DNA from: Chara braunii
Lineage: Eukaryota; Plantae; Charophyceae
Assembly (NCBI GenBank): GCA_003427395.1
Contig: BFEA01000010.1
Location: 3,082,167-3,146,166 of the forward strand
DNA length: 64,000 nucleotides
Direction: 5' to 3'
The notes under the pieces are model-generated. The model was not told the origin of the DNA. It saw nothing but the letters and a program-made list of their open reading frames with translations, and searched no databases. This document shows positions 17,432 to 58,433 of this stretch, piece by piece (the stretch's first letter is position 1; each line of letters opens with the position of its first letter). Both the position numbers and the translations under genes were made by a program.

Positions 17432-20129
17432 TGTTCGAGAAGAAGTTAAAAAACGTGGTGGTGTCGCGAAGGGCCTTGAAAGGGAAAGCCAGGGAGGTAC
17501 TATCGAGCTCAGAAGATGACGATCAGATCGAAGACAGACTGGAGAAGAGAAAGCGGCAACCGCCCGTGTGTCAAGCTAGCTCACCAGGGGAATCGCCGAC
17601 AAAGGTGGGGAAGGCTTCAACATCGAACCCTGTTGAAGAAGGGGAAGAACTGTCTCCAAGATTGAGGGTACCTCGGCGAAGAAATCGGACAGATGGAGTT
17701 GAGCTGGGCTATCCGTATCAGGACTCACCCCTCTCGGAAGGGGCACCGGTGAAAAATATTTAGAAGTCTGACTTCATATGACTCCTTCTCACGGTAGTAC
17801 TTCGTTCCACACGTCTGTATTCAGTTGTCGACAACAACTCTGGAAAGTGATACAAATCATTTATAGAAGCAACTGATATCAGTGAGCTTGAGCCTGCTCG
17901 AGATCTCTCAAACCGCTCTAGTACACGCCAATAATCGACTCGTGAACAACTATAGAATACAATCAATGGTGTCCATGGACAAACGTAGATGGCAAAGACG
18001 TGCTGCTCCCCACTAATAGATGGAGCCATCCAAAAACAGGGTCTGCTAATGAAAGATGCTCCCATCACCTCCATTAGCAACATCCACGACAAAAGGATGT
18101 TCCCCCCCCCCAAAAAAAAGAAAAAAAACGGCGAAGAAAATATCCCCCGTTATGAGACATGCGTGCTAACAATGACGTCAACCACAAAGTACACACACGT
18201 CTTATGAAGGTCTGACTTATCCCTTTCGTGCGTGCCACCACTACCCAATGCAGATGTTTGCCCATTCTTGCCTCGCCTTCGTCCGTAACCACCTTGCGGT
18301 CAGTTCTATCGTCATGAGTTGGCTTCAGGGCCGTCATCCAGAAAGGCTGGAGGTGGGTGGTCCTTCAACCACTGATCCAGTCCGTACCAGGACTGGGTCG
18401 TCTCGTCACTTTCCGCATTCTCTGCATTTGAGTCGTGATCCAACTGCTATTGTTCAATTTTTGTGGTCCCATTGAAAGTTTCCTCTTCGTGGTAACTTGG
18501 TAAGCAATAATGACCTGCAGTGTCACAGCTATGCCATCCCCAGGTTACGGGCATCAATAATGGATCCTTGTATATTATCATCCCCTCTCATCTCTTGCTC
18601 CTTCCCTATATAAACATTAATTTTCAACTTAGCTAATCTGTCATATTTACTAAAATTTGGGATAGCATCTACTACTACTCCCTCGCCATTTTTAGGCTCA
18701 TACTCCATAAGTACTTTAAGTGTTTGGGCCCATAGCAGTGAAGGCCCTTGCGGTAGGTCATGGTTGCACTCTCCCGTAATAGGCAAAGTCTAATGCAGCC
18801 AACGCTTATCTACACGCTTGCACACACGATGCACACAAGTTGTCAAGCTACTAGGCTCCGACAGCAACGACATGAGCGCCTCACCTCTGACAGCGCAACT
18901 CCTTGTGTGCGCCTACTACCAATAGTGAAGTGATTTTGCAACTACGTTTTCTTTATAAATCTCAAAAACGTTGCGGTTCCGCTAGTGATAGAGATGGAGA
19001 TGGAGGAAGAAGGGGGGAGCAAGATGCACAGCGCAGCTCCGCACGCAAGACTCCAGCGCACGAACTCCAAAATGTGCAAGTGTAGAATGAGTCCGAAAAA
19101 CAGACAATGGTTGGGGTATACCCCAGCGGACTGACGAACTGGACTGGACTGGCTGGTACCGATAGAGGTACCGGCCTGGACTGGACTGGACAGGACTGCC
19201 CCCGAATAGAACACAGGCCTGAGAGAACAGGCCAAGGGGCTGGTCTCACAGGCCAACCGGAGGTCCGTTACAACCAAGGTCTTAGGTTGAGGTGCAGAAG
19301 CAAGGAAGTTGTGTCGTAAACCGACGAATCGGCAACCGACCTGTTATCAGTGATAACAGAAGATAATGCTTGGTAGGATCAGGTTGAACAAGTCAAGCCT
19401 TTAATTGAATTTGCAGCCCTGCATCACAGTACAGGCCAAATAGAACCACTACTACGTTTGAGCCAAAAAGAGAACGTGTTCGATCTCATAGCCTAACTCC
19501 CCTACTAACGTTCACGTTACCTCCCTCAAAGTCATCCATAACTCTGGCATTGTCTTGCCAAAGTTTTCCCTAACAGAAAATAATATAACTCTCCGGATTT
19601 CACAAATTTAGGCAGCGCTCCCCGTAGGAAAAGTGTCTTTCCGGAATTTTCAGGCGTAAAAAAAAAATGACGAACTCCTTCAGATTTGAAACAATTTTGG
19701 CAGCGCTTCCCGTAGGAAAAGGAGACTGCCAAGATTTATACAAAGCTGAAAATGCAAAGACAAAACATAACTATGCTTGAGACAACCTTCTGACACTTAC
19801 CTGATAGTTAAAACCGGAGATAGTCTACATGTTCCCTTCTTGAAGATGGCATCGTGAGCTAACACCTAGTCTACCTAGTAGAGTCAGTCCTATCTTATCC
19901 CAAGTTCCCCATCATCCATCTCGTCTACCTATAGTTCCAGCACTCGGCGAGCATCTAAAGCGACTAAGCTATCAAAAAGGAAATTCCCAGAGATGCCCTA
20001 AAAGAAACATACATAGGCGAGTACAACAACATCTCTCACCAACCCACAGGTTCCTTTCCAGGTCCATAGTTCGTTCAAAAAAGCCTCGTTATTCCCTTTT
20101 TACCCTTCCTTACTTAAGACATAGGATCA

Positions 20130-21365
20130 TGCAACCCAACTTATGGATGTGACTGACCTGCCAACTTATATGGCTAGACCACACCAACTCATGGTGCCCT
20201 AACCTGGTAAAACAAGTATATGTAAGGCATAGGACCAAACCACACCAACTTATGGTGTGACCAGTTTCTGCCTAAACGATTGACATAAGCCGTATGACCG
20301 GGCCACACCAACTTATGGTGAGGCTAGTCAGCCTGAACGCTCAGCATACACAAAGAACTAAACCTCCTCAACTCATGAGGGGCCAACCTTAGCCTGAACA
20401 ACGACAAAAGGCATATGACCAGAACACAACAACTTATGTTGTGTCCAACCAGCCCATACAGTGACAAATAGCATAAAACTAGGCTACTAAACTTATGAGC
20501 AGTCTAGCACTTCCTAAACAACAACAAGCGCGTGTGACTAAACAACCCGCAACTTATGCGTTCGCTCAACCTCCACAACACAACTACATCCAACAAATAG
20601 AGTCACTCTCAATTTCTGTCTTCCGACGAGTGGTCAGGTCACCTCAACTCATGAGACTCCCCATCCAAACATCAGTTTATATTTAGAAAGGGAAATAGTC
20701 AAACTTTATATACCTCTCTGTTTTTGCGTTATCAAGGACATAAGACCAACTACCCAACTTTTGGATGAGTCGGCCTGCCCAAAGTTACCATACAATTTTG
20801 TATTGTTCATCTTCCTTCCCTCTGCTTTGTCTGCTACCGGCTTATATGGCTGGTTGTCCCAACTTATGGCGCCTAGCCTGCCATAAATATACATAATAAA
20901 TAAAGTATCATATTGTATACACCGATTCTTTTTATAATGGCGGCTCATAACTTGACCACACCAACTTATGGTGCGAATAGTCTTGTCTGAACAATAATCA
21001 TAAGGCATAGGACTAATCCACACCAACTTATGATGTGGTCAGTTTCTGCCTAAACAATCGACATAAGGCGTATGACCGGGCCGCACCAACTTATGGTGAG
21101 ACTGGTCAGCCTGAACATTCGACATACACAAAGAAGTGAATCCCCTCAACTTATGAGGAGTCCAGCCTCTGCTTGAACAAACGACGAGAGGCATATGACC
21201 AGAACACAACAACTTATGTTGTGTCCCGGCCAACCTAAACAGTTATACATGGCGTAGAGCCAGACTACCCAACTTATGAGTAGTCTAGCCCAACCTAGAC
21301 ATAACCACATGTGCGAAGAACTGAACAGCCCGTAACTTATGCGTTCGCCCAGCCTTAGCAACATA
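20130..21365. repeat. Array of CCAACTTATG-core units, including a ~400-bp block duplicated at ~780-bp spacing
   Basis: 20223 taaggcataggac.aa.ccacaccaacttatg recurs at 21001; equivalent CCAATCTTATG units at 54050-54740. Confidence 0.75.
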
Positions 21366-23264
21366 AGTCACAATTCTGTGTTGTCTGAATTCACACTGAT
21401 AATATGAATTAAACCAATACATACTTGTCAGTTTTACTTTTCAAAATATGTCATGAAATTAAACAAATAGACAAACAATTATCCTTCCCAGTCATACTTA
21501 CAGTCAGGCAATAGCAAAAGGATAATATAGTTTAGAGATAGGATCACACGCGTAAAACGAGCATTATACCTGAGTATTCCTTGCCTCAAGAACCCCGCCT
21601 AGGCTCCGGCAGAGCTCCCGCAGTCGGTGGGTGGACCTCCCACAATGTCTTGATGCGGACCTACGGGTTGCAATCCCGCCTGTCGCCTTCCTCTCAGCAC
21701 CAATAGATTAGACTTAGACTGAGAAGGGCAGAAGATAGATATGTCAGACTCTCGAGATCCAAGAGAGGGACAAACTCAACTCGCAAGAGAGGGCCTTGAA
21801 ATCTTGAGTCTCCTAAGGGCCCCGCAATGGCAGCCAAATATTGCAGCCAGATGGCCAACTCGAAGCCGAAACTCAGAACAATAATCCCCTGACAACCTCC
21901 AAATTGCAACAGTCGGCCCCTTTTTGTAGAGCCTGATTACTATTCTTAAAATCTCAACACCTCTCTTCCAACCAGAGCGTTCCTACGCAACCTAAGAATG
22001 CTGCGTTCAAACAGAGCACACCCCTGTGCTCAGCTCGAGTACAGGCTATAACAGCCCCTGACAGCAGTACTAACCAGCCGCCCCACTGTAGAAAGGAACT
22101 GTAGCGGTGCACTGCAGCAGCGCACAGCTAGGGGCAGCCCGCCTGAACAGTAAAATGTACAGCAATCTGCACCGCAACGTGCAGGGAGTGTATTGTGAAA
22201 GGCACAACGTCCGCTGTGTAGCGGCTAGTTTCATAGCACGGCAATAGCACAGGGGAAACACTGCAAAGCATACCCTTCAAGCAGCAGCAAAGCCGCCAAA
22301 CTTTGGGCCGAACCGAAGTTGTGGACTTAACGAGAAGTCACTGCCTCCCTGCAACAGTTCACTCTCAAGCCTCTCTCAGCGGACCGTGGCAAGAGGTTTG
22401 CATACCTCCAGGCTCAACAATTCAACCTTTGGTTAGGCACTTGAGTTGCAGCATCCCGCACCCTACCAGCTGCAGTATGTAGTGAAAGCAGTCCAAGGCA
22501 TGGTAATCCACAGTGATGCACTGCGAAACAGAGCGAAGCATAGTAAATCGGAAGACACATACAAAAACGCAGTCAGGACTACAAAGGCCCTGAACGCTGA
22601 AGGAGAGTCAGTCCACAACCCCAGCTGTCAACGGGCGTGAATACTTTGCTTTACCCACCACAACAAACGAATCCCCTCCTCTCAGCAACGCCCAGCGTCC
22701 AGACTGTCAACCACACAGTTATTCGACCGAAAGTGAGCAGCATGGCCGAAGTTCATACAGATATCGAGCACGCAGGCCACCAGCGGTAATAGCTTGGCTC
22801 CACAACCAGCTATCCTTTGTAGCAGCCTGACTCTATGTTAAGAACTATCTATTACGAGGCATAGTAGGTTGACTAGTAATCCCGTGTTGCCGATTGCCAC
22901 AGCCACACCGGCTGCTGAGAAGGCAATCTCTTGTTGTGGAGCAATTGACAATACCTCAATTACCGAAAAACAATTCTTGTCAAATGTGTAAGTAATAACC
23001 TTCCTGTTAATTAGCAATTCCCCGATACTGTTTGAGCTTGGCTATTTTTCCCTTTCTGCGGCTTGGTGCTGTTGGGAACACCGCACCTTGAATCTACCAC
23101 TTGCTACTAGGGAGAAAGTCAACCTTATAGCAGAACTTTGTGTGATCAGCAACAATGTTCGCATAAAACGAGCATCAGCAGCCCGCTGCCAAAAGAACCC
23201 GTAGCCATAGCAGTAATTCAGCGAGCACTGACCTCAATTGTAGCGGACAAACAGTCATGCAGTC

Positions 23265-23465
23265 AACAGACTCCAGGCCTGGGAGTGTTTTTGGTCACAC
23301 AACCCTGCACCACAGACTCAGGCCTCGTTGTGTTTTCGTCACACAGCCCAACTCGACAGACTCAGGCCTTGTTGTGTTTTGGTCACACAGCCCAGCTCGA
23401 CAGACTCAGGCCTGGGCTAGTTTTGGTCACAAAGCCCAACTCGACAGACTCAGGCCTGGGCTTGT
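23265..23465. repeat. ~39-bp tandem repeat (cacacagcccaactcgacagactcaggcct); related array at 25445-25595
   Basis: Directly visible tandem units. Confidence 0.8.
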
Positions 23466-23904
23466 GTGATGAACCCAGTCTGGTGCATGCTCAGAAGTCG
23501 TCAAGCACAAGTAATCCCAATATTTGCAACAAAAGTCTCTAAATCGTGAAGTGATAATTCAATCAGTATCTCATTACCATTAGACGAAGAGAGTGGTGAG
23601 AGATCAGACAAAAAAGAAGGTGGAGAAGAATCAATAATCATCAAGAGAATATTCCGACAATCCCACTCCTTTTCCAGGCTGCTCCCCTCCCTCGCACAAT
23701 CAATCAGTAACCAACAATGATGTTGTTCAATCCTGATCACAATGAAGTGCCACATGGCACAATTCTCATATGAAGGCCGTGAAGACCAACAGCAGCGAAA
23801 CGGTAGCAACATCAAACTCAAGTATGTATCTCGATCCAGACTTAACCAAAGATCCCGATTTTCCTCCCTGTCGTAATCAGACACCTCATGTAAACAGCGT
23901 GCCA

Positions 23905-25035
23905 CTTGCCACATCAGCAGCGTAGACAGGTGGCATACGCCACATCATTAATGAAATTAGGTGGCCACACCACCTCCGAATGAATACATGTGGCAAGCGC
24001 CATATCAGCAATGACGACTCGTGGCCTCACAACATCAACACTGCAGGTAAGTAGCTGCGCCACATCAACGTGACAGACAGGTGACAGCCCACGTCCTCAA
24101 TGCAGGTAAGTTGCTGCGCCACATCAGCGTGACAGACAGGTGGCAGCCCACGTCCTCAATACAAGTAAGTTGTTGCGCCACATCAGCGTGACAGACAGGT
24201 GGCAGCCCACATCATTAAAGAAGACAGATGGCCGCACCACCTCCAAATGAAGACACGTGGCAAGCGCCACATCAGCAATGCCGTGTAGACCATAGGCAGT
24301 GCCACATATACCAGAGGCAGCGCCATATCAGCAGGCCACGTAGACTCTGGGCAGCGCCACATATACCAGAGGCAGCGCCACTTCAGCAGGCCACGTAGAC
24401 CATAGGCAGCGCCACATATAGCAGAGGCAGCGCCACATCAGNNNNNNNNNNNNNNNNNNNNNNNNNNNNNNNNNNNNNNNNNNNNNNNNNNNNNNNNNNN
24501 NNNNNNNNNNNNNNNNNNNNNNNNNNNNNNNNNNNNNNNNNNNNNNNNNNNNNNNNNNNNNNNNNNNNNNNNNNNNNNNNNNNNNNNNNNNNNNNNNNNN
24601 NNNNNNNNNNNNNNNNNNNNNNNNNNNNNNNNNNNNNNNNNNNNNNNNNNNNNNNNNNNNNNNNNNNNNNNNNNNNNNNNNNNNNNNNNNNNNNNNNNNN
24701 NNNNNNNNNNNNNNNNNNNNNNNNNNNNNNNNNNNNNNNNNNNNNNNNNNNNNNNNNNNNNNNNNNNNNNNNNNNNAGGCAGCGCCACATCAGCAGGCTA
24801 CGTAGACCCTGGGCAGCGCCACATATACCAGAGGCAGTGCCACTTCAGCAGGCCACGTAGACCATAGGCAGCGCCACTTCAGCAGGCCACGTAGACCATA
24901 GGCAGCGCCACATATACCAGAGGCAGCACCACATCAGCAGGCCACGTAGACCCTGGGCAGCGCCACATCAGCATGCTACATAGGTGGCCGCGCCATGTCA
25001 GCATGACAGACAGATGGCAGCGCCACATCAGTAAT
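23905..25035. repeat. GC-rich minisatellite with GCAGCGCCACAT core, interrupted by an assembly gap
   Basis: More than 25 core copies on both sides of the N-run 24442-24776. Confidence 0.85.
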
Positions 25036-25642
25036 GTCTGGCGCCTGTAGTAGAGTGTGCCAGCATTCCGCCTCAATGCTGTGTCGTCGCTTGTAGAGCT
25101 TGTGCCCAGCCAGCGTCCAGCCAGCGTCGTGCCAGCATAATGCCGACGTCAAGTCAAAGTCAAGCCAGCGTTGAACCAGCATAGCAAGACTGAATGCTGA
25201 CTACCTAGAAGTCCAACTTTAAGTAGTGTTTGGCGAGGCTCTCTGGCCTCGAGTCTCCTCCCCTCAGTCGTCCAGATTGAGTTACAGCCGAAGGCTTGGA
25301 TTGTACAGTTGCAGAGTTCCCACTTGGACTTGATGTTGTCTGGGTACCTGCATACAAACAAGTGTGTCTGCTTGACCGGCGGCCTAGACTGGGTACCTTT
25401 CACTCTACAGTTGACTGTGACCCTTGAATTTCTTGTATGCAGTGCTTGGTCACACAGCCGAACGCAGCCTACTCAGGCCTGGGCATGTCTTGGTCACACA
25501 GCCAACGCAACATACTCAGGCCTGGGCGTGTCTTGATCACACAGCCTAGCGCAGCATACTCAGGCCTGGGCGTGTCTTGGTCACACAGCCCAGCGCAAAC
25601 CCATTTCAGGTTTGAGTTGCCCGAGGCTGAGTTCTGAGCCCC

Positions 25643-25732
25643 GGGCTACTTCTAAACAGGATTACTATACTTCACACGGGCCATGCTAAACTTCTCTGTA
25701 TCGTTCCACTTTCAGCGGATGTCCCGAAGGAC
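25643..25732 (-). ncRNA. U6 snRNA-derived sequence (5' ~55 nt near canonical, 3' part diverged)
   Basis: GTCCTTCGGGACATCCGCTGAAAGTGGAACGATACAGAGAAGTTTAGCATGGCCC: 5' UUCG stem-loop, intact ACAGAGA box and AGC triad; no adjacent T-run. Confidence 0.85.
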
Positions 25733-25817
25733 TGTGGCCATGTGACGGCCTTGAGATATCATCATTAAGCTGACCGACCGCAGGCAACTCGAAAATAGTT
25801 GGTTTTACTCATCAAGT

Positions 25818-25890
25818 TCCAACATCTGGATTCGAACACAAGACTGTATTTCAACAGTTCATGGGAGTACCCACTGAGCTAGGCTCTTGG
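25818..25890 (-). ncRNA. tRNA-like Pol III module upstream of the U6-like segment
   Basis: A box TAGCTCAGTGG, B box TGTTCGAATCC. Confidence 0.65.
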
Positions 25891-26114
25891 GTTAATGGTC
25901 TATCTTGGTACCAATATCGGACCGCGCCCCAAAATAAAAATAAAAGAAATGGGAATAAAAATAGGAAGAAAGAAATAAGGGACCTACCTGGTACTCCCTC
26001 GGCCCCTGTCGGCCGGGCCATTTGTCGGACTCCCCAGCAAAACTAAGGGAGGTAGTCCCACAAGACCCTCAATCCCTCAGCTTTCCTCCATGGCGCTCCT
26101 TTACTCCTCCCCTG

Positions 26115-26190
26115 CTGACTGCTGGCTTCGATCCTAGGGTCTTCATGGTGTCAGTCCAAAGTCTTAACCTATAAGGCTAAGCCCAAGCTT
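26115..26190 (-). ncRNA. Second tRNA-like module in E1
   Basis: TAGCCTTATAGGTTAAGAC (A box/D-loop-like) and GGATCGAAGCC (B-box-like), the same variant as at 38101-38113. Confidence 0.55.
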
Positions 26191-26849
26191 GAAGATAATA
26201 GGCGCGGACTTGACTATAACGACGTCCGTTATAGGCCTAAGCCTGTTGGGCTGTACAAAAGGCCGTATTTAGGCACACTGGCCATATGTGTCGGCCCTTG
26301 CCGTATGAAGGGGTCAATTTTGTCTGTCGCCGTTGTGCACCCCATCTTTCTCACCAGGTTACCTTCCTGAAAAAACTGCACTTTTACCCCCTATGCGTCG
26401 GAAAAACCCCGGCTTTCATGGTGCCTCCCGTGGCTTCTACCGTTGACCAATATCATAATCGACCTTGGAAGTCCCGTCTTCGCACCTTACTAATCCAGAG
26501 CCGTAGCAAGTGAGTCAAGCGGATCCGATAACCAAAACCTAGCTCCGACCATCACTGCCGGTCTCGAATGGGAATGTGCACCGCGCCCGCTATTGCAGCC
26601 TCTTCCCATTCCCTTTCTAGCTCATGCTACTAGGCGCAAGCGCCGCTCTCCTAACCAAGTGCCTGCCTAAAATACCTTTTGTGCCCTCAAAGTGCACACT
26701 CACGCACTCTCTAATCAGATAAAACAGTGAGTGTCATTCCCAACCTCTGAGAGTTGATTGTGGTTACTCAGAAAAGGGACACTCTCTCGGATACCGTTGA
26801 AAATGCACCTTTTGTGAGATGTAAAAATGTGCCAAAATACCCTTGTAAG

Positions 26850-27594
26850 CAGGGTTACCTGACCGAACGTTCGGGGGCCCCCGGGCTGGCCCCCGAACGT
26901 TCGGGCGTTTGGGGTACCGTTCGGGGGCCGAACACCTCCAGGTTCGGCCCCCGCCAAAAAACATTTCAGGGCCTAAAAATAAGTTTTTTTTTCTGAATTG
27001 TTTTTTATGAGTTCTGTATGATGTTACCTACACGCCTATAAATTTTGAAGTTATTCTGCTAAGCCAATAAAACATTAAAAATCGTCAAAGATGGGGGTGT
27101 GAAAACGTGCTCGCCCACTCACTATTTTGTTTTTTTTTTCACTTTTAACTTTTTGATTTCACTTTATTTCGGGGCCTAAATTTTTTATTTTTTTTTTGAA
27201 AATTGTTTAATAAGTTATTGATTACTTAAAATAAATATCTGTAAATTTTCAGGCCATTTGTCAATGCCAAAAAATAATTAAAAATCGGCAAAGATGGCGG
27301 TGTCGAAAAGGTGCTGGCACACTTACTCATTTTATTTCTCTTTTTATTTTTTCTTACTTTTATCATAGTGTTTATTTTCTGTATTTGATTTTTAATTCAA
27401 ATTTGGTAACAAATTTGGATGTAGTGCCCAGGCAAGTGTTGTTTAGTTAATTTTTCTCCATAACATTTTTTTGTTTCTGGAAATTTTTGATTTTTTTTTT
27501 TTTTTTGTCCGCGTTCGGTTCGAACGGCCGACCGCCTTCCAAAGGGGTCCCGTACGTTCGGGCGTTCGGCCCGTCCCGAACGCCGGAAACCCTG
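26850..27594. mobile_element. Non-autonomous hAT-type element inserted in the E1 terminus
   Basis: TIRs CAGGGTTACC / GGAAACCCTG; flanks cttgtaag/tttgtaaa (6/8); CCGAACG subterminal motifs; the host motif resumes after the element. Confidence 0.75.
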
Positions 27595-27618
27595 TTTGTA
27601 AAGGTATTCGGGCCGGCA

Positions 27619-29225
27619 ACGCTTTCGACGTTTCGGTACCGAAAACGCACTTCGGGGTTTCGGTGTTTCACTTAGTCCATTTTGTACACCTTGAACATTA
27701 CATCCCAATGCGCTTCCAGTATTCCGGTACCGAAAATTCACTTCAGGATCCCAGTGTGTTACTTGGTCTATTTTGTACACCTTAAATATTATATCCCGAT
27801 GCGCTTTCGATGTTTCGGTACCGAAAACGCACTTTGGGATTTTGGTGTTTCACTTAGTTTATTTTCTGCATATAGAACATCATATCCCGATGTGCTTTCG
27901 GTGTTTCGGTACGGAAAAAACACTTCGGGATTTCGGTGTTTTACTTAGTTTATTTTCTAGATATGAAACATTATATCCCGATGCGCTTTCGGTGTTTCGG
28001 TATCGAAAACGCACTTCGGTATTTTGATGTTTTATTTAGTATATTTTCTACATATGGAACATTATATCCCGATGCGCTTTCGGCGTTTTAGTACCGAAAC
28101 GCACTTCGAGATTCGGTGTTTTACTTTGTCCATTTTGTACATGTTGAATATTATATTCCTATCTTCTTTCGGTGTTTCGGTACCGAAAACACACATCGGA
28201 ATTTAAGTGTCTTACTTAGTCCATTTTGTACACGTTGAACATTATATCCCGATGTACTTTCGATGTTTCAGTACTGAAAACACACTTCGGGATTTCAGTG
28301 TTTTACTTAGTTTATTTTTCTACATATGGAACATTATGTCCTGATGAATTTTCAGTGTTTCGGTATCGAAAATACACTTCGGGATTCGGTGTTTTACTTA
28401 GTTTATTTTCTACATATGAAACATTATATCCCGATGTGCTTTCAACGTTTCGGTACGGAAAATGCACTTCTGGATTTCGGTGTTTTACTTAGTTCATTTT
28501 GTACACATTGAACATCTCATCCCGATGCGTTTTTTGTGTTTCGGTCCCGAAAACGCACCTTGGGATTTCTGTGTTTTACTTAGTTTATTTTCTACACATG
28601 AAATATTATATCGCGATGCGCTTTGGTATTTCGGTACCAAAAATGCACTTCTGAATTTCAGTGTTTTACTTAGTTTATTTTCTACATATGGAACATTATA
28701 TCCCAATGCGCTTTCCGGCGTTACGGTACTGAAAACGCACTACTTCATAATTTCAGTGTTTTACCTAGTTTATTTTCTACATATGAAACATTATATCCCA
28801 ATGCGTTTTTCGACGTTTCGGTACCGAAAACGCACTTCGAGAGTTCGATGTCTTACTTAGTTTATTTTCTACATATGGAACATTGTATCCCGATGCGTTT
28901 TCCGTGTTTCGGTACTGAAAATGCAGTTCGGGATTTCGATGTTTTACTTAGTTTATTTTCTATACATGAAATATTATATCTCGATGCGCTTTTCAGCGTT
29001 TCGGTACCGAAAACGCACTTTAGGATTTCGGTGTTTTACTTCGTCCATTTTGTACACCTTGAACATTATATCCCGATGCGTTTTCGGTGTTTTTGTACCA
29101 AAAAGCCACTTCGGGATTTCGGTGTTTTACTTCGTTTATTTTCTACATCTTGAACATTATATCTCGATGCGCTTTAGGTGTTTCGATACCGAAAACGCGT
29201 TTCGGGATCTCATTGTTTTACTTAG
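27619..29225. repeat. ~91-bp satellite array (~17 units) with internal palindrome GTGTTTCGGTACCGAAAACGCAC
   Basis: cattatatcccgatg recurs with a ~91-bp period. Confidence 0.9.
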
Positions 29226-31015: not shown

Positions 31016-31105
31016 NNNNNNNNNNNNNNNNNNNNNNNNNNNNNNNNNNNNNNNNNNNNNNNNNNNNNNNNNNNNNNNNNNNNNNNNNNNNNNNNNNNNN
31101 NNNNN

Positions 31106-37392: not shown

Positions 37393-37443
<51 letters not shown>

Positions 37444-37855
37444 GGGGTGTATATTGCCCGGTTATAGCAGTAGATACACATGGGTTTTCATCATCCCTTA
37501 CACAGAAACTCTCTGCAGCCTGTTTCTCCGAAACGAACGAGCGCAGAGTGAAACCATAGGATCCANAAAAAAAAAAAAAAAAAAAAACAATCTAAAACAA
37601 AATCCAAAAAGAAATCTAAAAGGAAATCTAAAAGAAAATCTAAAAAGAATTATAAAAAAACAGAAAAGAAAAGAAACTTGCCTCTAAAAAACGGTTGCCC
37701 GTTTCCTTTGGGCGTTGTCTCCGCCCTGGGGACTTATANTCCCCAGTCACTTTTGTATGCGTCACGTGGCGCTTTAGTTGTAGGTTTTTTTTTTTTTTTT
37801 TTTTTTTTTNTTACCGTTGGCTTATGCCAACGGTCCCATCATACCGTGGCACACT

Positions 37856-37928: not shown

Positions 37929-37929
37929 G

Positions 37930-38071: not shown

Positions 38072-38162
38072 AAAAGAAGGAGCTAGCCCAGCAGGGCCTA
38101 CTGGCTTCGATCCCCGCATCTGCGACCTATCAGGCTGGTACGCTACCTACTGGGCTAGCTCC
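38072..38162 (-). ncRNA. tRNA-like Pol III unit closed by a 13-bp inverted repeat and followed by T5
   Basis: A box TAGCCCAGTAGG, B box GGATCGAAGCC; GGAGCTAGCCCAG (38080-38092) is complementary to CTGGGCTAGCTCC (38150-38162). Confidence 0.65.
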
Positions 38163-41241: not shown

Positions 41242-41296
<55 letters not shown>

Positions 41297-44630: not shown

Positions 44631-44634
44631 GTAT

Positions 44635-44681
<47 letters not shown>

Positions 44682-46692: not shown

Positions 46693-48995
46693 CAAGTTAG
46701 GTGCGCATGTTCACTAGGAGCTATGGTACAAAGTCTACTGCCTTATATATCTATCGATCAAAAAGTCATTTGCTTTGTAATTCTATAAAGTGCAATTTCT
46801 ATTTTTTTTTGAAATTTTAGATTTTTTTTATTCTGTTATGCGTGCCTTAATATAGCCTACTTGGACTTGACCACATACATGCAGGCAGACTTTGGGCAGT
46901 CACACAAGGGAGGTAGGCATGCACACAAGTCGCCACGCAAGTAAACAAGTGGACAGGTGGGCAGGCAAAGAGGCAGGCAAGCAAGTATGCAGACAAACAA
47001 CCAGGTACGTGGATTGACAAAAAGGTAGTGAGGCAGGCCAGTAGGAAGGCAGACATACAGTACAATGACAAACATGCAGTTGGTCGACAAATATGTAGGC
47101 TGCTAGACAGCCAACCTTTATGCAGGTTGGCAAGCCAGGTATGCAGGTAAATTGGCAGCTATAGTAGTCACCTGGTATGTCTATCAGTCAAAAAATCGTT
47201 TGCATTATGAAGTGTTACTTTTTTTCGAATTTATATGTGCCTAAACGTAGTCTGCCTGGACATGAAAACATATGTGTCTAGCTGGCAGGCAAGCGCACAA
47301 GCAGGCTTTGGGGAGTCAGGCAAAGCAGGTGGGCAGGCATGTTGATTGTTATGCACACAAGTATCCACGCAGGCAGACAAGTGGACAGGTGGGCAGACAA
47401 ACAAGCAAGTAAGCAGCCAGGTGGACCATCAGAAGGCAGGCAAGCAAATGACTGATTGTGATTGAAACAAATCAATGAACTGTTGAAATTTAGACCGAAG
47501 TTAAACTCTGCATGACTGATTCTCATGGAACCAACTCAATGAAGCAATATTTTAAATTACATGGGGCCGATCAGCTCAGTGATAATATCTCAAGGCAGTA
47601 ACCCTTTCGAAAGAAATAGGTAAATAAAGGGTGGCGGACATATGAATCAATCATTTTCTTTGTTTGTAAAATTAATAAAAAAATATTAAAAAAATATAGA
47701 AAAAAATTGATTTAACGTTCTATAATTTTGTCAGTACTTACAAAAAATAGAATTTTAAATGAATGAATAACAGTAAAAAGTACCAATAAAAAATAGCAAT
47801 AAAACATAGCAGTAAATAGAAACTAGATGAAAGAACAATTACATGCTTGGAACCTTCATTTGAAACACGTCCGGCGTAAGCTGTAATGAACACGTTTTTC
47901 ATTTGATCGATATCATCAATCTGTAGATCATAAAGAAAAGTAACGAAAAACCACTGTTAAATTTATAATATACAGCCAGACCACCAGAGTAGCCCTGGCC
48001 ACTTGCCCGACCGGACCAATAAAAGAATATATAAAAAAACTACAAAATATTTCATTTTATATTTTAAATTAGGCAAAGAATTTTGAATTTTTGATGTAAC
48101 CCCGAGGTAAAAGTTATTCACTTTATTTTTTTGTCCAACGTAGTTCTTTTTTATTTTTTTAGAAATTTTTAATTTTTTTTTTTGCTGGGACCGTACGCCC
48201 GGACAAATAAGGTGGACCTGGGCAGTCCGGCTGGTAGCCTAGATATCCAGACAAAAATATTAAAAATAAACGTGCAACATTAATTTAAATACGAAAGGAA
48301 AAAACTTCAAAAGAAGCGTTTATAAAATAAAACATACCGCAATCTGAGACATATAGGACACATATGTTTTCATGTCCAGACAAACTATGTTTAGGCACAT
48401 ATAAATTCAGAAAAAAGTAACACTTCATAATGCAAACGAGTTTTTGACTGATAGAGATACCAGGTGACTACTATAGTTGCCAACGTACCTGCATACCTGG
48501 CTTTTCAACCTGCATAAAGGCTGACTGTCTAACAGCCTACATATTTGTCGACCTGATGCATGTTTGCCATTGTATTGCATGTCTGCATTCCTGCTGGCCT
48601 GCCTCACTACCTTTCTGTCAATCCACGTACCTGGTTGTTTGTCTGCATATTTGCTTGCCTGCCTGTTTGCCTGCTCACCTGTCCACTTGTTTACTTGCGT
48701 GGCGACTTGTGTGCATAGCTACGAACATGCATGCCTACCTCCCTTGTGTGACTGCCCAAAGTCTGCTTGCATGTGTGACTATTTGTCCACTTGCCTGCGA
48801 CGTGGACACATATGTGGTCAAGTTCAAGTAGGCTATGTTTAGGCACGCATAACAGAATTAAAAAAAATCTAAAATTTCAAAAAAAATAGAAATTGCACTT
48901 TATAGAATCACAAAGCAAACGACTTTTTGATCGATAGATATATAAGGAAGTAGACTTTGTACCATAGCTCCTAGTCAACATGCGTACCTAACTTG
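46693..48995. repeat. Long inverted repeat: arms 46693-47278 and 48357-48995, ~1.08-kb AT-rich spacer
   Basis: caagttaggtgcgcatgtt..actaggagctatggtacaaagtctac is mirrored at 48950-48995; the inner ends catatgtgtc/gacacatatg match. Confidence 0.9.
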
Positions 48996-49888
48996 TCGCC
49001 CTTCAAATAGGTTGACCACACTGCCTGAAGGTTGGCTGTATAGATCATCACAAGGTATGGTAGGAATGACACAAGGAAACATCAGAAGAGGCAGGCAAAC
49101 GGGAAGAGGGAACAAAAGGAGCAAGAGCCAATGACAAAACAGGATGGGAAGAGCAGGGAGCAAAGAATAAAGATGGGTTTGTTGTGTATGTGACATCACC
49201 AAGTTCAGATTACGGAGAAGGAACATAATTTTTTGCTTGTCTGTATTTTCTTTGTCTATTGACTCTATTCTTTGTTCCCTCTAGCCAATCAAGGATCATA
49301 CTAAATGTATATTCCTGAGCAAAACTTGCGAGCAAAGTTCCTCTGCAGCAGATTCCAAAGATATTATAGACTGACCCCCCTCCCCGGTAATTGTTTGATT
49401 TATAAATTGAATACAGCGAAGTTCAGACCAAATTTTAAGTTATGTGGGGAATTAATCGAAGACACGGACCATCAAACACGTTTTCAATGATTACTCAGCA
49501 AGAAGTGTGTCGATAAAGATGACAACATTGCCATTCCCGCACCTCGACGAGTTCATTCCGAAACTTGCAAATCAACACCCACTTCCTGATGAAAAATGTA
49601 AGTTTTTGTTTTCTCTTTTTGTAGCTATACGAACCTATACTCCTTGTCGAAGATTATCAATTAATTATGGCTGTTGGCAAACTCTCCAAGTGATGTTTTT
49701 TTAATTAAATTTTAAAATTTTGATATAGGTACAACTAATTTGAAAATTTAAAACAGATCCTTATGGTCCACCGTTGTAAGATGTCTAGGGGGCTCTCCAA
49801 CTAATTTCAATCTTTGTGTTTTTAAAATTGAAACATGTACAATAAGAAATGTGAGTCTTTATGCAAGTGAGCACAATATTCTTTATAA

Positions 49889-50113
49889 CATACTTGCAAG
49901 CGGACGTCATCGGGGAGGTTCCACACGTGCGACAGACCGCCGGACCGGACCCGCGAATGTGCGCCTGACGATCAGTTACGCCCCGCCCCCCCCAATAAAA
50001 AAAAATGACCCCGTCCGGTCCGGTCCGGGTCCGTCTAGTCCGAGGGGAGGGTGCCGCGCGCGGCAAAGCGGGCCGGACCGGACGCTCGTCCGGTCCGTCT
50101 GCTTGCAAGTATG
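49889..50113. mobile_element. hAT-like MITE
   Basis: TIRs CATACTTGCAAGC / GCTTGCAAGTATG; flanks ctttataa/gtttatag (6/8). Confidence 0.75.
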
Positions 50114-50618
50114 GTTTATAGCATACAGGGAACGAGATATTGCAACCTTGTTCAACGTCAACGCTCTAAGAATAACGGTGAGTTGATTTTTTTAAAAAAA
50201 AATTGTTAGAATTAATTATTAATTCTAACAAACACTCATTTCCAAGACCCCAACAAACACCAAACTTGGCACATACAGACCTTGACCACGAAGTACAACA
50301 GCGGAGGATTTTAAAAATTAAATTCTAAAAAATTGATCAAAAATGCACATTTTAGTGTCGAGGAGGTTAAACCACATGTTCCTTTCATGATGTCTTGCCC
50401 GGGCCTCGTAAGCCCCTAGGGCGACCAGTATCCCGAGCCATGACGAGGCTGGCAGTACCGGATGCTCCCTTGCCTACACCGCCCACGAGAATAACACGGA
50501 AGGGGAAAAAAAATACTAATAAAAAATATATAAAACTAGGAATAAAAAAAAAAACAATGCATGTGCGTGGGAGAGAGAGAGAGAGTCCATAACGAGAGAG
50601 AGAGAGAAAAACCATAAC

Positions 50619-50680
<62 letters not shown>

Positions 50681-53600
50681 GACGGGAGGGGGGAAAAAAA
50701 AAAACATGTGAATGCATTTTCACTGTCAATTTTTCTTTTTTTTAGGTATTGTTTGTCCATGCCCAGGTACCCCAGGCGTTAGACCCCCCCGGGCGTCATG
50801 ACCGAATGACTGACAACTTGTGACAATCTTCCTAGCTTTTCAGTGGCATGCTATGTCTCTCTCTCTCTATCTATGTATCTATACATCTACGTATCTATTT
50901 ACATATCTATCTACCTATCTATCCACCTATCTATCTTTGCGGCAAATATCAACCATTAAAATCAAAGATGCATCTTTGTTGATAGCTTCTTGTTTTAAAT
51001 TATCTTTGTTTTGTGTGTGTACGCCCATCTATAGGGGTCTCCTTTCCAACAGTGATGTATATCGAGAACTGCAACGCAAGAACTTGTCACACAAAATGTC
51101 ACGACTTCTCGTGCAAAGGTGAACTCTTTTCTGCCCTGCTCTTCTGTACCATGTTAGAAATCAATCATTTTATTGCACTTAGTTGCTTTGGTCAATATCA
51201 AAACCTCTTGTTTTTTTTTTTTGTGTGTGATTACAGACTGGCATCCAGACCATCGTCCGCTTGTGGCTTGTGAGCCCGCACCAACCCTGAAAATCCTAAA
51301 AATTCAGGGCTCTGTTAACCGTCTCTCAGGTGAGGGCTCGCAAAAAAGAAAAATTATAATTTTAACAATCCTTAAAATTTACTAAAAAACTTTGTTATGG
51401 AAAGTTTTTGTTATTGGGCTTGTCTAGTAGCTTTACGCTATCGAGCGCATCGGTCCGGCACGGCACGAGCGGGGCGGGACCCTCCCGACCACGTCACGCA
51501 GGTGTTGGTTTGATCCTCGTCGAGAATACATCTGGAGCTTCTGCACGTCGCTCCGGTCGAGTGCGCCGGCCATATCTCTCGCGAGCCCCTACGACAGGAT
51601 ACGGCTTATGCAAGGCACGACTTACCTCCACCTTACGGGAGCTGTGACCTCCCTTTGGTGGGCGTATCCCCGCCGAGCTACGAGTCCACAGTACGAAAGT
51701 TAATCAGTTGCATCGTAGAGGTAGACCTGCCAAAGGCGTTTTTCGTTCGATGTAGCATAGGGGGTACGCGTGGTTTTACGCCTCTATCGGACCCGCACGT
51801 GAACCGACGCTTTGGGGGCTGAGGTCCCACTCACGACTCGTCGTCGGTCGACTAGGACGAATCCCACACACCACGCGTACACCTCTAAAAACATAAATTT
51901 TAGAAGACACACACACATACATAACGGCACAAACAAACAACTGACACAAATCCTTGTCCCTTCAATAACCTTCCCATAACTTCCCGATGCGGAAGTCAGA
52001 TGGGCGACGCGCGCGAGACTTTGTATAAAACCCCGCGGACGCATAGTCTTCCCATATCGACTAGCAATGTATGAATATGCATGGAGTCGCGATGATGGCG
52101 TGCTATGTAGTGCCTATAATCAAGCGGTCCTTCGTGGATCCGAGTACCACTTATGACACTTAGGTGTCAAACTCAAAGTATAGTGAAAGTTTACCCCTTC
52201 ACGATATTGCACGGCCGAAGGAACAGTCGTGCACCCCCCTCGGCACCTTCGGCCTTTAGGCTGAGTGTCTCGGTCGGCAGGGCAAATAGGCTCTGCGCGG
52301 CGGGTGATGCCTTCCATGAAGAGTCTAGGACTTGGGATGTCCTGGACAAGGACCTGAAATCCAAGGTCAGGACTAACGTCCGACTAAGAAATCTCTTTAA
52401 GAAGCATACAACAAATAGAGGGGGGTTTCCTTCCTTTCTCAATCTCAACCCCAATTAAACCCTTAAGCATAGGTCTTTTGGCTACGATAACATCCAACCA
52501 TAGGTAAATACGTATATATATATGTATGTATATAGTGGAGAATATATACGTGACGATCACTTCTCACAATCATAGTGAGACTCCTCACAAACATATATAT
52601 GTATGTGATCGCAAACAATCAAATCCAAAGTCCGAACCACAGAATATACTTGCAATCACATCAAAGAGTCAACCAAAAGTCCACACACTACACAGAGTCA
52701 ACTTTCACCATTCTCTATACTCATACCCCCTCACTTTAGTTATTTACGTCCCAGCCTTCGTCCAATCTTCCATAATTAAATACTCAGTACCTTTGTTAAA
52801 TGGTCATTCAATAAAAGTCAGGGTGAAAACCTTAATAAAATAATAAAACTCACGAGGGCTGAAGCCTTTTAGGTTGAGTATTGAGGACAAATTGGAGTTG
52901 AGTCGCGGACCGACGAATCGGCAACCGACTTGTTATCAGTGATAATAAAAGATGATCCTCGTGGGATTAAGCTGAATATTTTCCAGATCCTGAATCAGAT
53001 GATCAAGAGGACCTGTAACACAGGACAGACCAATACTCAAACTAAGTTCATAAGTATATGGAGAATAAAACTTCATAACATATTCTCACTCAAGGTCCTT
53101 CTACTAGCTAAGCCTAGGCGTACCTCTAAGTCAGTACCCAACGCAAGGTAAACCTATAGTAGCATCTCTCCTACCCAGGGTGGATTGCCATAATTGTCAC
53201 CTGTCAAAATATAGTCCAACTCCTTTTAAAAAAAATAAAATCGGCAGCGCTTCCTGTAGGAAAAATATTTTTCCAAAATTTATGATAACTAAAACATGAA
53301 AACAAAACTAATCTTTAATTCTGGAAAGTCCAATTTTGTCTAACTCCCTGAATTAGTAAAAATTTTAGCAGCGCTCCCTTTAGAAAAGAAGCCTTTCCAG
53401 ATTTTTACTAAGTCGGATATGAACTCAGAAGCAAGACATGAGTTCAACAACTAAGACAAAATCAAACTAACTTCTTAGATTTGTATAAATTTCGGCATCA
53501 CTCCCTTTGAAAAAGTGTTAAACCAAAATTTATACAAAGTTAAGTTCAGAATCTAAAGTAACTTTGACGTCTCAAGGTCCAATTTTTTGTTTAACTCCCT

Positions 53601-56600
53601 GAAGTAACAAAAATTTGAGTAGCACTCTCTTTGGAAAATAAGGCTTTCCAAATTTTTACTAAGCCGAAAAGTCAGAAAAACTGAACCTTGAAAAAACAAA
53701 ATTTGACTAACTCCTAGGTTTTGTAAAAAAATTGGCAGCGCTTCCCGCTGAAAAAGTGGTTTACCAAGATTTATACAATACCAAGTATAATAAAAAATCA
53801 CAGAAAATGCAGGAATTGACCTAAGTAAAATAAACTTAGCTAAAAAAATGCGGAAATTAAAACTAACTCCTATGACTCTAGCACGTGGCGAACATCTAAA
53901 GCAACTACCTATCAACTGAAACTCATACTAAGCAGTGATCTCACTCAGCCACATGCAAGTCAAACCACAAAGGTAAATACTCTCATCAGCCCAAAGTCAA
54001 CCTTATCAAACAATAGTTCATGATCTTTAAATAATTTATCCCTTTATACCCAACTTACATAAGGCATAAAGCTAGACCACCCAATTTTATGGGAACCTAT
54101 CTAGCTCAGGGCACTACAATTTTTCTCTTCTCTAGGCACACGACTAGGTTAGCCAGCCTAAGTATCCACGTTATATATAATTGTTTGCACTTTGTCTTTT
54201 AAGGCAACATATGACTGAACCGGTCATCTTATATTAAGATTCAGCCTGTCCATTCTTACCACAATTTTCATTCTTAATTCATAGTCTTTTCAGTTTGTGG
54301 TAAGCTATAGTTAGACCATCCAATCTTATGAAAAAATGTCTGACTAGCTTGTTCATAAGTAAATAGTATAAGATATAAACAAATTTAACCTTTTGGTTCC
54401 AGCATGTGCGCGGTTCCAGACCAGACCACCCAATCTTATGGGAACCATCCCTGTCTTTTGCCTGAATTTTCCCCTTAAAAATAAAACAAGAGAGAGTATG
54501 AGTTATCCAATCTTATGGAACATGCCCAGCTCTCCTTCAGAACTAATCAAACATACGAAAACCCAAAGAAGCAAGGCAACCAAGCCATCCAATCTTATGA
54601 AAAAATGCTTGGTTCCTAAAAGTCAAACAAATGCAGCCCTCGCAAGTCAAAGCAACCAGACCACCCAATCTTATGGAAACTTGTCTGGTTCTTCAGGCAA
54701 TCGAAAATAAGCACAACACTGGACCCCCCAATCTTATGAAGACTCTCCCAACCTTTGGTTGACCCAGTCAGAGACAAGCAATACAACCTTCCTCCCACCT
54801 TTCCCCCCAGATGTAACTCCACAATCTTCTTTCAGTCAGCTAAACAAAACTGAAGCTGCAACTTGCACACTCACTCCTTTAATTAAGTCTGATTTATCCT
54901 GAAAGTCAAACATAAAGTCAAAGTAGGGATGCAAACAATATACTCAGTCAACATAGCAAGAAGTACAAATATGGGTTATAGCTGGGTTTATAGAGGGAAA
55001 ACAAATGGTTACCTCTCAATTCCCTGTCACTAGAACTCCTCCTGAGTTCTGGTAGAGCTCTCTCAATCGGTGCGCTGACTCCCCATAAATTCTTGCTGCG
55101 GCCCTACGGGTTGCAATCCCGTCTGCCGCCTTCCTCTCAGAACAGGACTAGACTTAGATTAAGAAGGGCAGAAGATAAGGGGTTTCAGACTCTCGAGATA
55201 TAGGAGAGGGACAGACTCAACTCTCTATAGAGGGACTTGTTATCTTCCAGCGCCTGAGGGCCTCACAATGGCGGCTAGAATACAGTAACAGCTTGGTCAA
55301 AACCAAAGTCAAACCAGCGGGCTTTGTCCTCCTCCGAGATTACAGCGTTGTACCCACTCACCAGATGGGCCGCTGGCCTGCCAAGGTGGGCGACGTTCAA
55401 AATAGAGTCTGCCCCTTCCAAAGAACGCCGCAAACTTCACAAAGACACCACACGCGAAGCAACCATACGGAGCAGCAAGGCACCGTGGGGCACAACAACT
55501 ACCAGTATGAGCAACAATGAATGAAGATGACACAACAACAAGCTCAACATAATAGTGAGCAGGAGTAGTGCAGTTAGAAACAAATTTTGTAGTAGCCTGT
55601 AGCCGACTGAGCCAATCGAAGTATGTAACGGAGTTGGTCACGACACCGCAGCTCAAGCTTCGGTCGGCCGCTACTTCAGCCAGCAGGCAAGCATGCCATC
55701 TATGACCCGCCTCTCGCTGCCTTCCCTGCAGACGAATGGAACAGAACTGTCTCAATAGTCGGGTGGGGCAAGGCCGACCCGCTCTCCTGAAGATATGCGT
55801 CAGCCAACAAGTACGACTCTGACCCCGCTGCTGGTCTGCCTCTACTTCGACTGATTACGAAGAATCAAGTTAGACTGTATCTTCCGCTAAAATGCGGAAA
55901 GATACATTCGTATACCAATCACTCGCTATGCCGCCGTCGCGACCAGACCTTCACTATGCCAGGTATGACCACTCCTCCTTCCTCTATTTAGCATGCACCT
56001 GTCCACCGGTAAGTCCTCGACCCCATAAATGTCTGACCCCGCTGTTAGCCTCACACTACTTCTGATGACAAAAAGAGCGAAACGGAATGATCCTCCTGAT
56101 AGGACCGACCAGATACATGCACGCAAAGAGATAGAGAGGTTCTTCTTCCATCGCAAGGAGCAGCGCACCGGCCAACAAATGAGTATCCTACCCTCGCGGC
56201 TTATTCCCCTCCGTTCCCTCCCCATCATCAGCCTGAGTAGAAGCTAGATGAACCTTACGCCAAGACCGAGAAGATGCAACCGCCCGTCTGCTCACCTTTT
56301 CATCGCGCGACCTTTTTTTTTTTTTTTACTATCTTCATTTTTACTATCATTCGTGCTGGTCTAACTCGAAATTTGGGTTCGCCTTACCACAAAACCTCTG
56401 CCTCGTTTGTCTCTTCACTTGAACCTATCAGTAATCACGTGCGCTACCCCTTTTTCCCACTTTGCCCCGTTCATGCTTCCCACTATATCCGTTTCATAAC
56501 GCCTTCACGCGACTCTATCTCTACTAACTCAGATTCTACTAACGAACCATAAAAGTTAACTTTACCAATGAAATCAACGCGGCCTAATACCATAGCTTCG

Positions 56601-56992
56601 GCTCTCCTCGTATCGAAATCTATGGGGAGGCGCATGAGCTATGTGTTTCCCGCTCTCCCTCCTTCTCCACGCACAACTTTCCTTTCCTAAATCACAACTC
56701 ACTAACTACCTGCTCAAGCTAACGGCAGATTCGCGTTCACCGACCCAAAGAACCTCGTCGTAGACTCCTCCCTTGTCTGATTCCATTGGTAATCACACGC
56801 GCTACTCCCCTTACTCCACTATGCTCTACAAAACCCTTCACCATCGTTATTCTCCCCTTTACATCTTCTCCCTCGTACGTACTTAGTGCAACCCGCGTCC
56901 GAGTCCACTCGCCTCAGCTCTGTTGACATCGGCTTGTCTTATAGCATCGTTCCTCGTCGGCCTGACCGAAGAGTATATATGAAATCATAAGG

Positions 56993-57101
56993 AAAAAAAA
57001 GTCGCTTTGGCCCTCCCCTGGTTTGTACGCGTTACTCTTGCACAGACGTCAGGCTAATCTCTTTTGTATCGTTCCAATTTTCAACGGATGTCCCGAAGGA
57101 A
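56993..57101 (-). ncRNA. Full-length diverged U6 snRNA-like sequence with T8 terminator
   Basis: TCCTTCGGGACATCCGTTGAAAATTGGAACGATACAAAAGAGATTAGCCTGACGTCTGTGCAAGAGTAACGCGTACAAACCAGGGGAGGGCCAAAG..TTTTTTTT is colinear with U6; the ACAGAGA box is altered to ACAAAAG. Confidence 0.8.
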
Positions 57102-57166
57102 TGGACCTGTGGGTTTGCTTCCACAACCCCCTCTCCCCTTTGGTGCGCTCTGCTTAGGCAGGGCCA
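57102..57166 (-). ncRNA. Degenerate tRNA-like module abutting the 5' end of the U6-like sequence
   Basis: Closing stem TGGCCCTG/CAGGTCCA (7/8); T-arm-like TGTGG-AAGCAAAC-CCACA; poor A and B boxes. Confidence 0.35.
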
Positions 57167-58433
57167 TTTTTCAAACCCTCAATGGGCGAACCCGCACACA
57201 GACTCCTCACGACAGATCACTGTCAGCGATCACGCGGCCACAGAGGCACACACCGCCCGGGCAGTCCCACCTTTGGGGGCTGAGTACTTGTCAAACCGCA
57301 TACGCATTGACCGCGATTGGTCCCGCTATTGCGCTCAATAAAGATAACACACAAAGGTAACAATAGTAATAATAATCCTAATTAAACAGGTACTTGCGTG
57401 ACGTGCTAACTTTACTGAAATGCTTTGAAGTCACATTGTTGTTGATGTCGTTCTTCGTACGTACGCACAGGTCAACAGCAAGTACGCCTCTCCCCCCAAA
57501 AAAAAAAAAAAAAAAAAATCTTAATTCAATCGGAAATAAAAGTCTGGTTGGTTACCAGCACCGATTTTCACAATCATCAAATGAAAAAGAGATCACACGG
57601 GTCTTAAGTCTGAGAGCCCACACACTCTCTTTTTCTACTGAACCATTTAGTCAACGTAAATTACGGGCACAGACGTGCCTCGCGCGGTATACTTAAACTT
57701 TAAACCAACCTATTTTTTGTCATCTGCAAAAACCCGGGCGGATACCCTTGTAATGGTATTCACACTGACAGATTACCAGACCATATTAAGTGATGTCCAC
57801 AGCGCTTCGCAGAATTGAAAAGCTATAAATTCATCCTTAACTCCAAATGCTGACGAGAAAGGAACCAATCCGATTAGCGGACAGACTCAGGTTCGAGGCC
57901 TCCAACAATCCATGTCCATTCAACTATATGCTGTCAGGATTCTAACCTGGGTCTCCATTGTCCTGACACTAGGACATCGGTGTACTGGACATACGTACTA
58001 CAACATAAGTTTCAGTGACCTCTCAACTTTCCTCCCCCATTTGTCCTAGACAAACGTTGGCTTCTCGATAGGTGTCCCTAGTCTCTACCCTGCTAGTAGG
58101 GCCATAACTAGGGATGCGGGTCCTAACCGAGACCTTCGAAGGCACTCTCACTTCCCTCCCAACAATCTTCACAATTAAACATATATATATATATATAAAA
58201 TCTTATTTTGGACTCTTCTTGCAGTCTAGTACAGGAACGTCAGGTCTCCATCCTGGCCCACAATAGTCTGGGTGATCGTGCCAGATCTACGGTCCACCTC
58301 ATTGCTACTTTAGCGGTAGTGCCCTCGCAGGTTGCGCCACGATAGGTTTTCTCCTGATAAGTATTCAATCAGGGCTAAAAAAGACTCGACTCTTATCCCA
58401 CGCCATCCCACAGGAGTAAAACCCTGAAATGTG

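Follow-up and report, generated by a model that had tools for sequence, protein, structure and literature searches.

The 64-kb stretch of Chara braunii DNA analysed here, referred to as the window, contains three long non-coding units, E1, E2 and E3, all placed on the minus strand. The units share one end, and each carries a piece of U6 small nuclear RNA (snRNA) sequence a short distance inside it. For comparison we used loci L001–L010, all taken from the same assembly (GCA_003427395.1) of this ~2-Gb genome. E1 occupies 19280–27619, with its left edge set at the start of homology with E2. E3 occupies 34355–38744, the extent that is collinear with L002 1481–6832. The E1-homologous part of E2 is 52867–57770, and the candidate whole insertion, with GATTAC on both sides, is 51235–57770. 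There are two assembly gaps. One (24442–24776) lies inside a single tandem array of E1, in which the sequences on the two sides (24315–24415 and 24777–24877) are 96% identical, and the length of E1 is accordingly uncertain. The other (31016–31105) is between E1 and E3, within a (TG)n run. Repeat units continue on both sides of each gap, and all U6 pieces and termini lie clear of the gaps.

The shared end is a conserved block of ~49 nt. It includes the exact 10-mer ATACCCTTGT, which occurs three times in the window, always on the plus strand (26837, 38716 and 57742). The block is known in five units on three scaffolds: in E1, in E3 (38696–38744, minus strand), in E2 (57722–57770, minus strand) and, on the other scaffolds, at L002 6784–6832 and L004 9203–9251. 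Similarity ends at the same base in all copies, which in the window is 27619, 38744 and 57770. Read on the minus strand, four of the five units start with 5′-TG. A purine-rich run resembling a polypurine tract (PPT), AGAGGAGGCGG, lies just outside the end of E3 (38745–38758) and is found beside E3 only. The TG start and this purine-rich run indicate that the minus strand is the sense strand of a unit resembling a long terminal repeat (LTR), and that the block is its 5′ (U3) end. An 18-nt near-palindrome also lies within the terminus. In E1 the block is split by a 745-bp miniature inverted-repeat transposable element (MITE) of hAT type (26851–27595), which is bounded by terminal inverted repeats and an 8-bp duplication (CTTGTAAG/TTTGTAAA) and cuts off the ATACCCTTGT part from the last 24 bases. 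This MITE belongs to a family of ~745 bp with CAGGGTT-type inverted ends, of which further copies, 70–89% identical, are found at L004 15301–16179, L004 18869–19649 and L009 6801–7832.

Rfam covariance models identify one U6-derived segment in each unit, all on the minus strand. In E1, 25673–25732 corresponds to U6 nt 1–65, the 5′ half, and starts exactly at U6 nt 1 (46.8 bits on a short stretch, E 1.5e-10). In E3, 37931–37991 corresponds to nt 47–105 with the T-run and scores 56.7 bits, above the gathering score; these 61 nt agree with the Rfam consensus at every conserved position. In E2, 56993–57106 is a decayed full-length U6 reaching from nt 1 to a T8 tail (35.6 bits, E 3e-7), and its ACAGAGA box is mutated. 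The boundaries fall on natural RNA ends, with the start at nt 1 in E1 and E2 and the end at the U-tail in E2 and E3. The window pieces resemble a functional plant-type U6 gene in the 5′ stem (GTCC..TTCG..GGAC), in a consensus-matching 3′ part and in the T-run. They differ from such a gene in that only one of the three is full length, its ACAGAGA being mutated, while the other two are halves, and an upstream sequence element (USE) and a TATA box are not seen. U6 has no internal promoter and depends on an external one. In the upstream sequence that we read, no TATA or USE-like element stands at the expected distance from any of the three pieces, and none of them combines full length, an intact ACAGAGA and an upstream USE and TATA as a functional U6 gene does. 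Together with the RNA-end signatures, the missing promoter argues that the pieces are copies of the RNA and not of the gene. No target duplication was found round the U6 of E1 or E3. Round the U6 of E2, AAAGGGGAGA may be a 10-nt flanking repeat, but a marginal one (p ~0.02). No hammerhead or other Rfam family was detected near the cassettes.

The placement of U6 is consistent. In all four carriers (E1, E2, E3 and L002) it runs in the sense of the TG end and lies 0.66–1.13 kb inside. The distance from the U6 5′ end to the element end is 664 nt in E2, 753 nt in E3 and ~1134 nt in E1 with the insertion removed. About ten U6 fragments were found in 270 kb of other Chara DNA, or ~1 per 27 kb. At this density it is very unlikely that three independent fragments would fall by coincidence within one 0.5-kb zone and share an orientation, and either a capture mechanism or selection places U6 behind the terminus. 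The preliminary description, made from the sequence alone, had reported three minus-strand U6 segments, a shared terminal motif and a hAT insertion in E1. All of these are confirmed, the U6 segments within a few bases.

The units are related only in part, as seen with blastn and nhmmer. E1 19280–21863 is collinear with E2 52867–55305, and this 2.5-kb homology shows no coding constraint (codon-phase mismatches 168/172/161). E3 33350–33937 matches E2 51342–51930, within a left module (51342–52265) that is common to E2, E3 (33350–33943) and L004. The same module is inverted in L002 (980–77) and is therefore a separable repeat unit. The 2–3 kb that hold U6 cannot be aligned between any two of E1, E2 and E3, save for U6 itself and the terminus. 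L004 ends in a perfect terminus and resembles E2 in its deeper part; its final 2.2 kb contain neither U6 nor any other Rfam family. The different U6 extents (1–65 in E1, 1–105 in E2 and 47–105 in E3), the unrelated flanks and the U6-less L004 point to repeated acquisition rather than one ancestral module. These alignments are best read as placing E1, E2 and E3 in a superfamily whose members keep the end and vary in the interior, and not as showing copies of one element.

One of these acquisitions can be followed in a second copy. We compared the window U6 pieces with the other loci using blastn and MAFFT. L002 5666–6832 is homologous to window 37596–38744 at 61% identity and holds every part of the E3 cassette, in unchanged order: long hairpin, U6, tail-to-tail tRNA-like piece, small hairpin, A-run and terminus. 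The long hairpin is closed by GGAGCTAGCC/GGCTAGCTCC in both, and the U6 of L002 (5991–6055) has the same U6 breakpoint as that of E3. Homologous sequence continues on both sides of the cassette. The shared cassette and its A-run are therefore older than the split of E3 and L002 and were copied as part of the unit. Judged by this alignment, the E3-type U6 piece is element-borne and inherited. U6 and its junction form the best-kept stretch of the alignment, with identities of 0.82–0.84 in 50-column windows compared with 0.61 overall; the U6 part alone is 81% identical against 61%. Dispersed copies thus occur on other scaffolds of the assembly, E3-like in L002 and E2-like in L004. In addition, 44–66% of sampled words of 36800–38800 are present in contigs of four sequencing runs of ~1.1–1.3 Gbase each, which hints, at most, at several near-identical copies.

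Close to two of the U6 pieces lie motifs of tRNA type. We scanned the window and 192 kb of other Chara DNA for A-box/B-box pairs, allowing ≤1 mismatch per box and boxes 30–60 nt apart. The 64 kb contain two pairs only, at 25828–25881 in E1 and 38103–38157 in E3, both on the minus strand, where 0.04 would be expected by chance; the 192 kb contain none. Both pairs lie on the 5′ side of a U6 piece, 95–111 nt away, and E2 lacks a module of this kind. At the modules no tRNA is found by ARAGORN, relaxed settings included, or by Rfam RF00005 at E ≤ 10 on 600-nt stretches. In E1 the pair is followed by a T4 run before U6. In E3 the pair sits in an 85-nt hairpin (38078–38162, minus strand), which is followed by T5 and whose 13–18 bp stem is kept in L002 through a one-sided change. 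Folding, computed on the sequence beside the conserved U6 core (37954–37991), gives a rod-like structure with a z of -5.3. The hairpin interior, boxes included, is 52% identical in L002, where the boxes are decayed. Since each tRNA-like module has its own T4–T5 run before U6, module and U6 would not form one RNA polymerase III (Pol III) unit. On the other side of the E3 U6, at 37785–37923 (minus strand), an antisense piece resembling a tRNA T-arm stands tail-to-tail with the U6 T-run and is followed by a small hairpin and A25. The A25 lies 118 nt past U6, and all of these features are common to L002.

The preliminary description had gone further and taken the three units as diverged copies of one family, each with a tRNA-like module upstream of U6 and all with one conserved Pol III cassette borne in U3. 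Family membership stands as far as the shared end and the partial E1/E2 and E2/E3 homologies reach, but does not extend to the unalignable U6-bearing parts. Tracts of tRNA type are found upstream in E1 and E3, not in E2, and pass no tRNA model. An element-borne cassette in a U3-like kilobase is supported by its inheritance in E3 and L002; a single cassette at a conserved position is not, given the different U6 extents, the non-homologous flanks and the empty L004.

On the whole we regard it as probable, with considerable reserve, that E1, E2 and E3 belong to a decayed LTR-like superfamily of long (4.4–8 kb) non-coding Chara braunii repeats whose U3-like end repeatedly captured Pol III RNAs by reverse transcription. 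The units would most likely be solo or orphaned LTRs of giant Chara retrotransposons. The first kilobase behind the conserved integration-type end appears to have taken up cDNA of abundant Pol III transcripts several times, with sense U6 bounded by natural RNA ends and tRNA-derived scraps as the cargo. Most likely, reverse transcriptase switched template to co-packaged host RNAs; alternatively, a chimeric retrocopy of the type made by long interspersed nuclear elements (LINEs) may have landed in an active copy. Template switching in minus-strand synthesis would place U6 in sense, as observed. The captured cargo would then be copied with the element, mostly as a passive passenger. LTR identity is likely, if unproven here: the sequence features that point to it are the TG start, the conserved end with variable interior, the direct rather than inverted arrangement, the dispersed copies, the PPT-like run beside E3 and the candidate 6-bp duplication (GATTAC) round 51235–57770.

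Several observations weigh against this interpretation. No pair of like units surrounds an internal region in the window; E2 and E3 have 12.5 kb between them but are not alike. Their common part is only the 0.6-kb left module at ~65%, and we rejected the two as LTRs of one element. There is no gag-pol, and no Pfam domain was found in 27 open reading frames (ORFs) in and between the units (ORFs overlapping 37954–37991 were excluded). This ORF-level scan also gave no retroelement or transposase protein between E3 and E2. A KDZ transposase and a PrimPol-like gene, considered for 38745–51234, gained no support from Pfam, with no match at E ≤ 0.05 among the scanned, unspliced ORFs of ≥85 aa. A CCHC ORF at 16595–17428 was rejected as gag of the E units, as it belongs to unrelated small elements of 6.5–7 kb. 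No convincing primer-binding site is present in the window, and the PPT-like run is confined to E3. The 3′ ends of the units could not be placed. Only one weak target duplication was found, the 6-bp GATTAC round E2 (51235–57770), with a probability of ~0.05 by chance near the expected edge, and none for the E1 or E3 unit. To the right of E2 (57771–57783) GATTAC is followed directly by CAGACCAT, and at the left edge (51229–51258) 11 extra bases lie between the two. The U6 piece, best kept between E3 and L002 and unmutated in E3, is not what a passive passenger predicts. The A-run that ends the E3 cassette fits LINE-type retroposition equally well. Thus, of the LTR features proposed in the preliminary description, pairs, gag-pol and a primer-binding site are missing from the window, and a PPT-like run and the GATTAC candidate are present at one unit each.

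The nearest known systems differ in informative ways. The TRIMp3 elements Cassandra (5S rRNA), Helenus (tRNA) and Ajax (5S rRNA) are miniature, 0.3–1.3 kb, with an LTR built round a Pol III promoter (Kojima 2024, PMC10886601). Their small-RNA sequence was probably gained by retro-insertion into the LTR and then propagated with the element, and a U6-bearing LTR is not reported there (PMC10886601). Two of the three Chara units resemble TRIMp3 in having box A/B-type motifs. Unlike TRIMp3 (<1.3 kb), the Chara units are 4.4–8 kb long, their cargo is U6, an RNA with an external promoter that is missing here, and the cargo varies by unit, with boxes in E1 and E3, absent in E2 and decayed in L002. A second parallel is given by the U6/LINE-1 chimeric retrocopies (PMC11838501) and the tripartite template-switch chimeras of Magnaporthe (PMC2104539). 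As in the U6/LINE-1 chimeras, the template of Chara U6 was the mature RNA, read through to nt 1, and the copy is joined to other RNA-derived pieces; the E3 cassette ends in an A-run. The Chara pieces differ in having no convincing target duplications (the E2 10-mer is marginal) and in forming an inherited mosaic whose place recurs across a repeat family. Packaging of U6 and pre-tRNAs by retroviral particles is selective (PMC4378196), and murine leukaemia virus (MLV) and human immunodeficiency virus (HIV) package U6, 7SL and pre-tRNAs (PMC4378196, PMC4997597). These are the same RNA classes (U6 and tRNA precursors) as in the Chara units, and packaging, as shown for animal retroviruses, would offer a plausible route into element cDNA. 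As far as our searches reached, the packaging literature has no stable incorporation of U6 into LTRs, and literature searches found no description of a U6-bearing LTR family. What the window adds is a shared 49-nt terminus across unalignable units, one case of inheritance, one U6-less member and the A/B-box statistic.

Promoter-less U6 recurring in the same zone poses a question unlike that of Cassandra or Helenus. Either U6 and tRNA precursors enter Chara particles together and recombination with them is highly frequent, or the element profits from some part of U6. Should capture be the correct explanation, these units would be a natural record of host RNAs entering retroelement particles in the plant lineage.

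Among the alternatives, the one that survives best is that each U6 piece came as an ordinary LINE-mediated retrocopy or chimera, inserted into an old repeat independently of the others, perhaps in an insertion-tolerant or AT-rich zone near the terminus. We consider this unlikely. For the E3 type, because of its A-run, the main alternative to template switching is the LINE-type chimeric retrocopy that landed in an active copy. LINE-type retroposition of U6 does take place in Chara: L010 27988–28091 (minus strand) is a near-intact full U6 between 14-nt direct repeats, AAAATATGCTGATT, and is a classical target-primed retrocopy. A second such copy, with poly(A), is L005 7650–7770 (minus strand), in which an antisense tRNA T-arm piece is joined to the last 27 nt of U6 (7668–7694) and A22. 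The A25 of E3, standing after the small hairpin, resembles the tail of a LINE or a short interspersed nuclear element, the 10-nt repeat of E2 could be a target duplication, and U6/LINE-1 chimeras are a known class (PMC11838501). Against independent landing, the E3 cassette with its A-run is older than the E3/L002 split, has homology on both sides and was copied with the unit. Poly(A) and target duplications that would mark separate retrocopies, which the preliminary description had raised, reduce to this shared A25 and the marginal E2 10-mer, with none at E1 or E3. At the fragment density given above, it is improbable that three independent hits would share both a 0.5-kb zone and an orientation.

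The capture scenario treats the cargo as mostly passive. It is improbable, in our judgement, that the cassettes are instead selected working modules, whose U6 3′ half, ending in the U-tail, and tRNA-type boxes would recruit La/Lsm, TFIIIC/Pol III or U6 pairing partners and help packaging, nuclear handling or protection from silencing. For such a role speak the high identity of U6 and junction between E3 and L002, the 61 nt of E3 without departure from the U6 consensus, the hairpin stem kept despite a one-sided change, the absence of other A/B-box pairs from 256 kb, and the recurrence of U6 in the same zone and orientation of three otherwise unalignable units. L004, however, has no U6, what E1 and E2 retain of it is decayed and differs between the two, and the boxes are decayed in L002. 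The conservation is also a comparison of two copies only, and it is the single hint of cassette function in these sequences. It could reflect selection in active lineages, activity in the recent past, or renewal of the sequence when the element recombined with genuine U6 RNA. We give slightly less credence still to the specific form of this idea, in which giant Chara LTRs would keep, under selection, a U3 module of captured Pol III RNAs (U6 3′ half with U-tail and box A/B hairpin) that recruits host RNA-binding or Pol III/TFIIIC factors, for example for packaging, for nuclear handling or as a silencing shield; if true, Chara would have the first counterpart of Cassandra-type LTRs that is based on U6. 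About as improbable as selected modules in general is that the units are not LTRs at all and are other mobile or segmentally duplicated non-coding DNA, such as ends of large DNA transposons or satellite-associated repeats sharing a recombination site: the lack of paired LTRs, primer-binding site and retrotransposon protein in the window, the near-palindrome in the terminus, and the termini of E1 and L004 abutting a 91-nt satellite and another retroelement's repeat would fit, but the 5′-TG start, the conserved end with variable interior, the direct arrangement and the PPT-like run beside E3 are features of LTRs.

Further U6 mosaics are present at L005 6140–6245 (minus strand) and L009 9451–9581. 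In one such mosaic a decayed, near full-length U6 lies just upstream of a 393-aa ORF without Pfam match, and another has tandem partial U6 5′ duplicates beside an assembly gap. The frequency of U6 fragments matters for the annotation of snRNA genes in the Chara genome. Within E3, a 60–90 nt segment at 37292–37385 has further copies of either orientation, 74–90% identical, at four places in L005 and in L010, and may be a very short interspersed repeat. A 175-aa ORF of E3 has no homologue and is not on record. The 91-nt satellite (27620–29225, 17.6 units) directly adjoins the E1 terminus. A second satellite family, with units of 147/136 nt, occurs three times in the window (12693–13651, 58434–59385 and 60790–61598); the copies at 12693–13651 and 58434–59385 are inverted and 89% identical.

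The small retroelements of 6.5–7 kb are found at window 15285–17750, L001 12109–18580, L005 8829–15742, L004 9251–15162 and L003 9263–17082. They have ~1-kb direct repeats that are 88–96% identical, a G/N-rich ORF with a CCHC knuckle, and a second ORF of 495–556 aa. The CCHC-knuckle ORF of the window (16595–17428) has close relatives in Chara braunii only. The second ORF has no Pfam match; among its Chara relatives the assigned names are reverse-transcriptase-domain protein and, in one case, GIY-YIG-domain protein, which suggests that these elements are Penelope-like. In L004 the repeat of such an element starts exactly at the E-type terminus. Probable host-gene exons lie near the two ends of the window, both on the minus strand: 61815–62183 encodes an eIF3g-like knuckle (E 1e-3, below the cut-off), and 655–1671 encodes a ribosomal L25p-family domain (E 6e-6).

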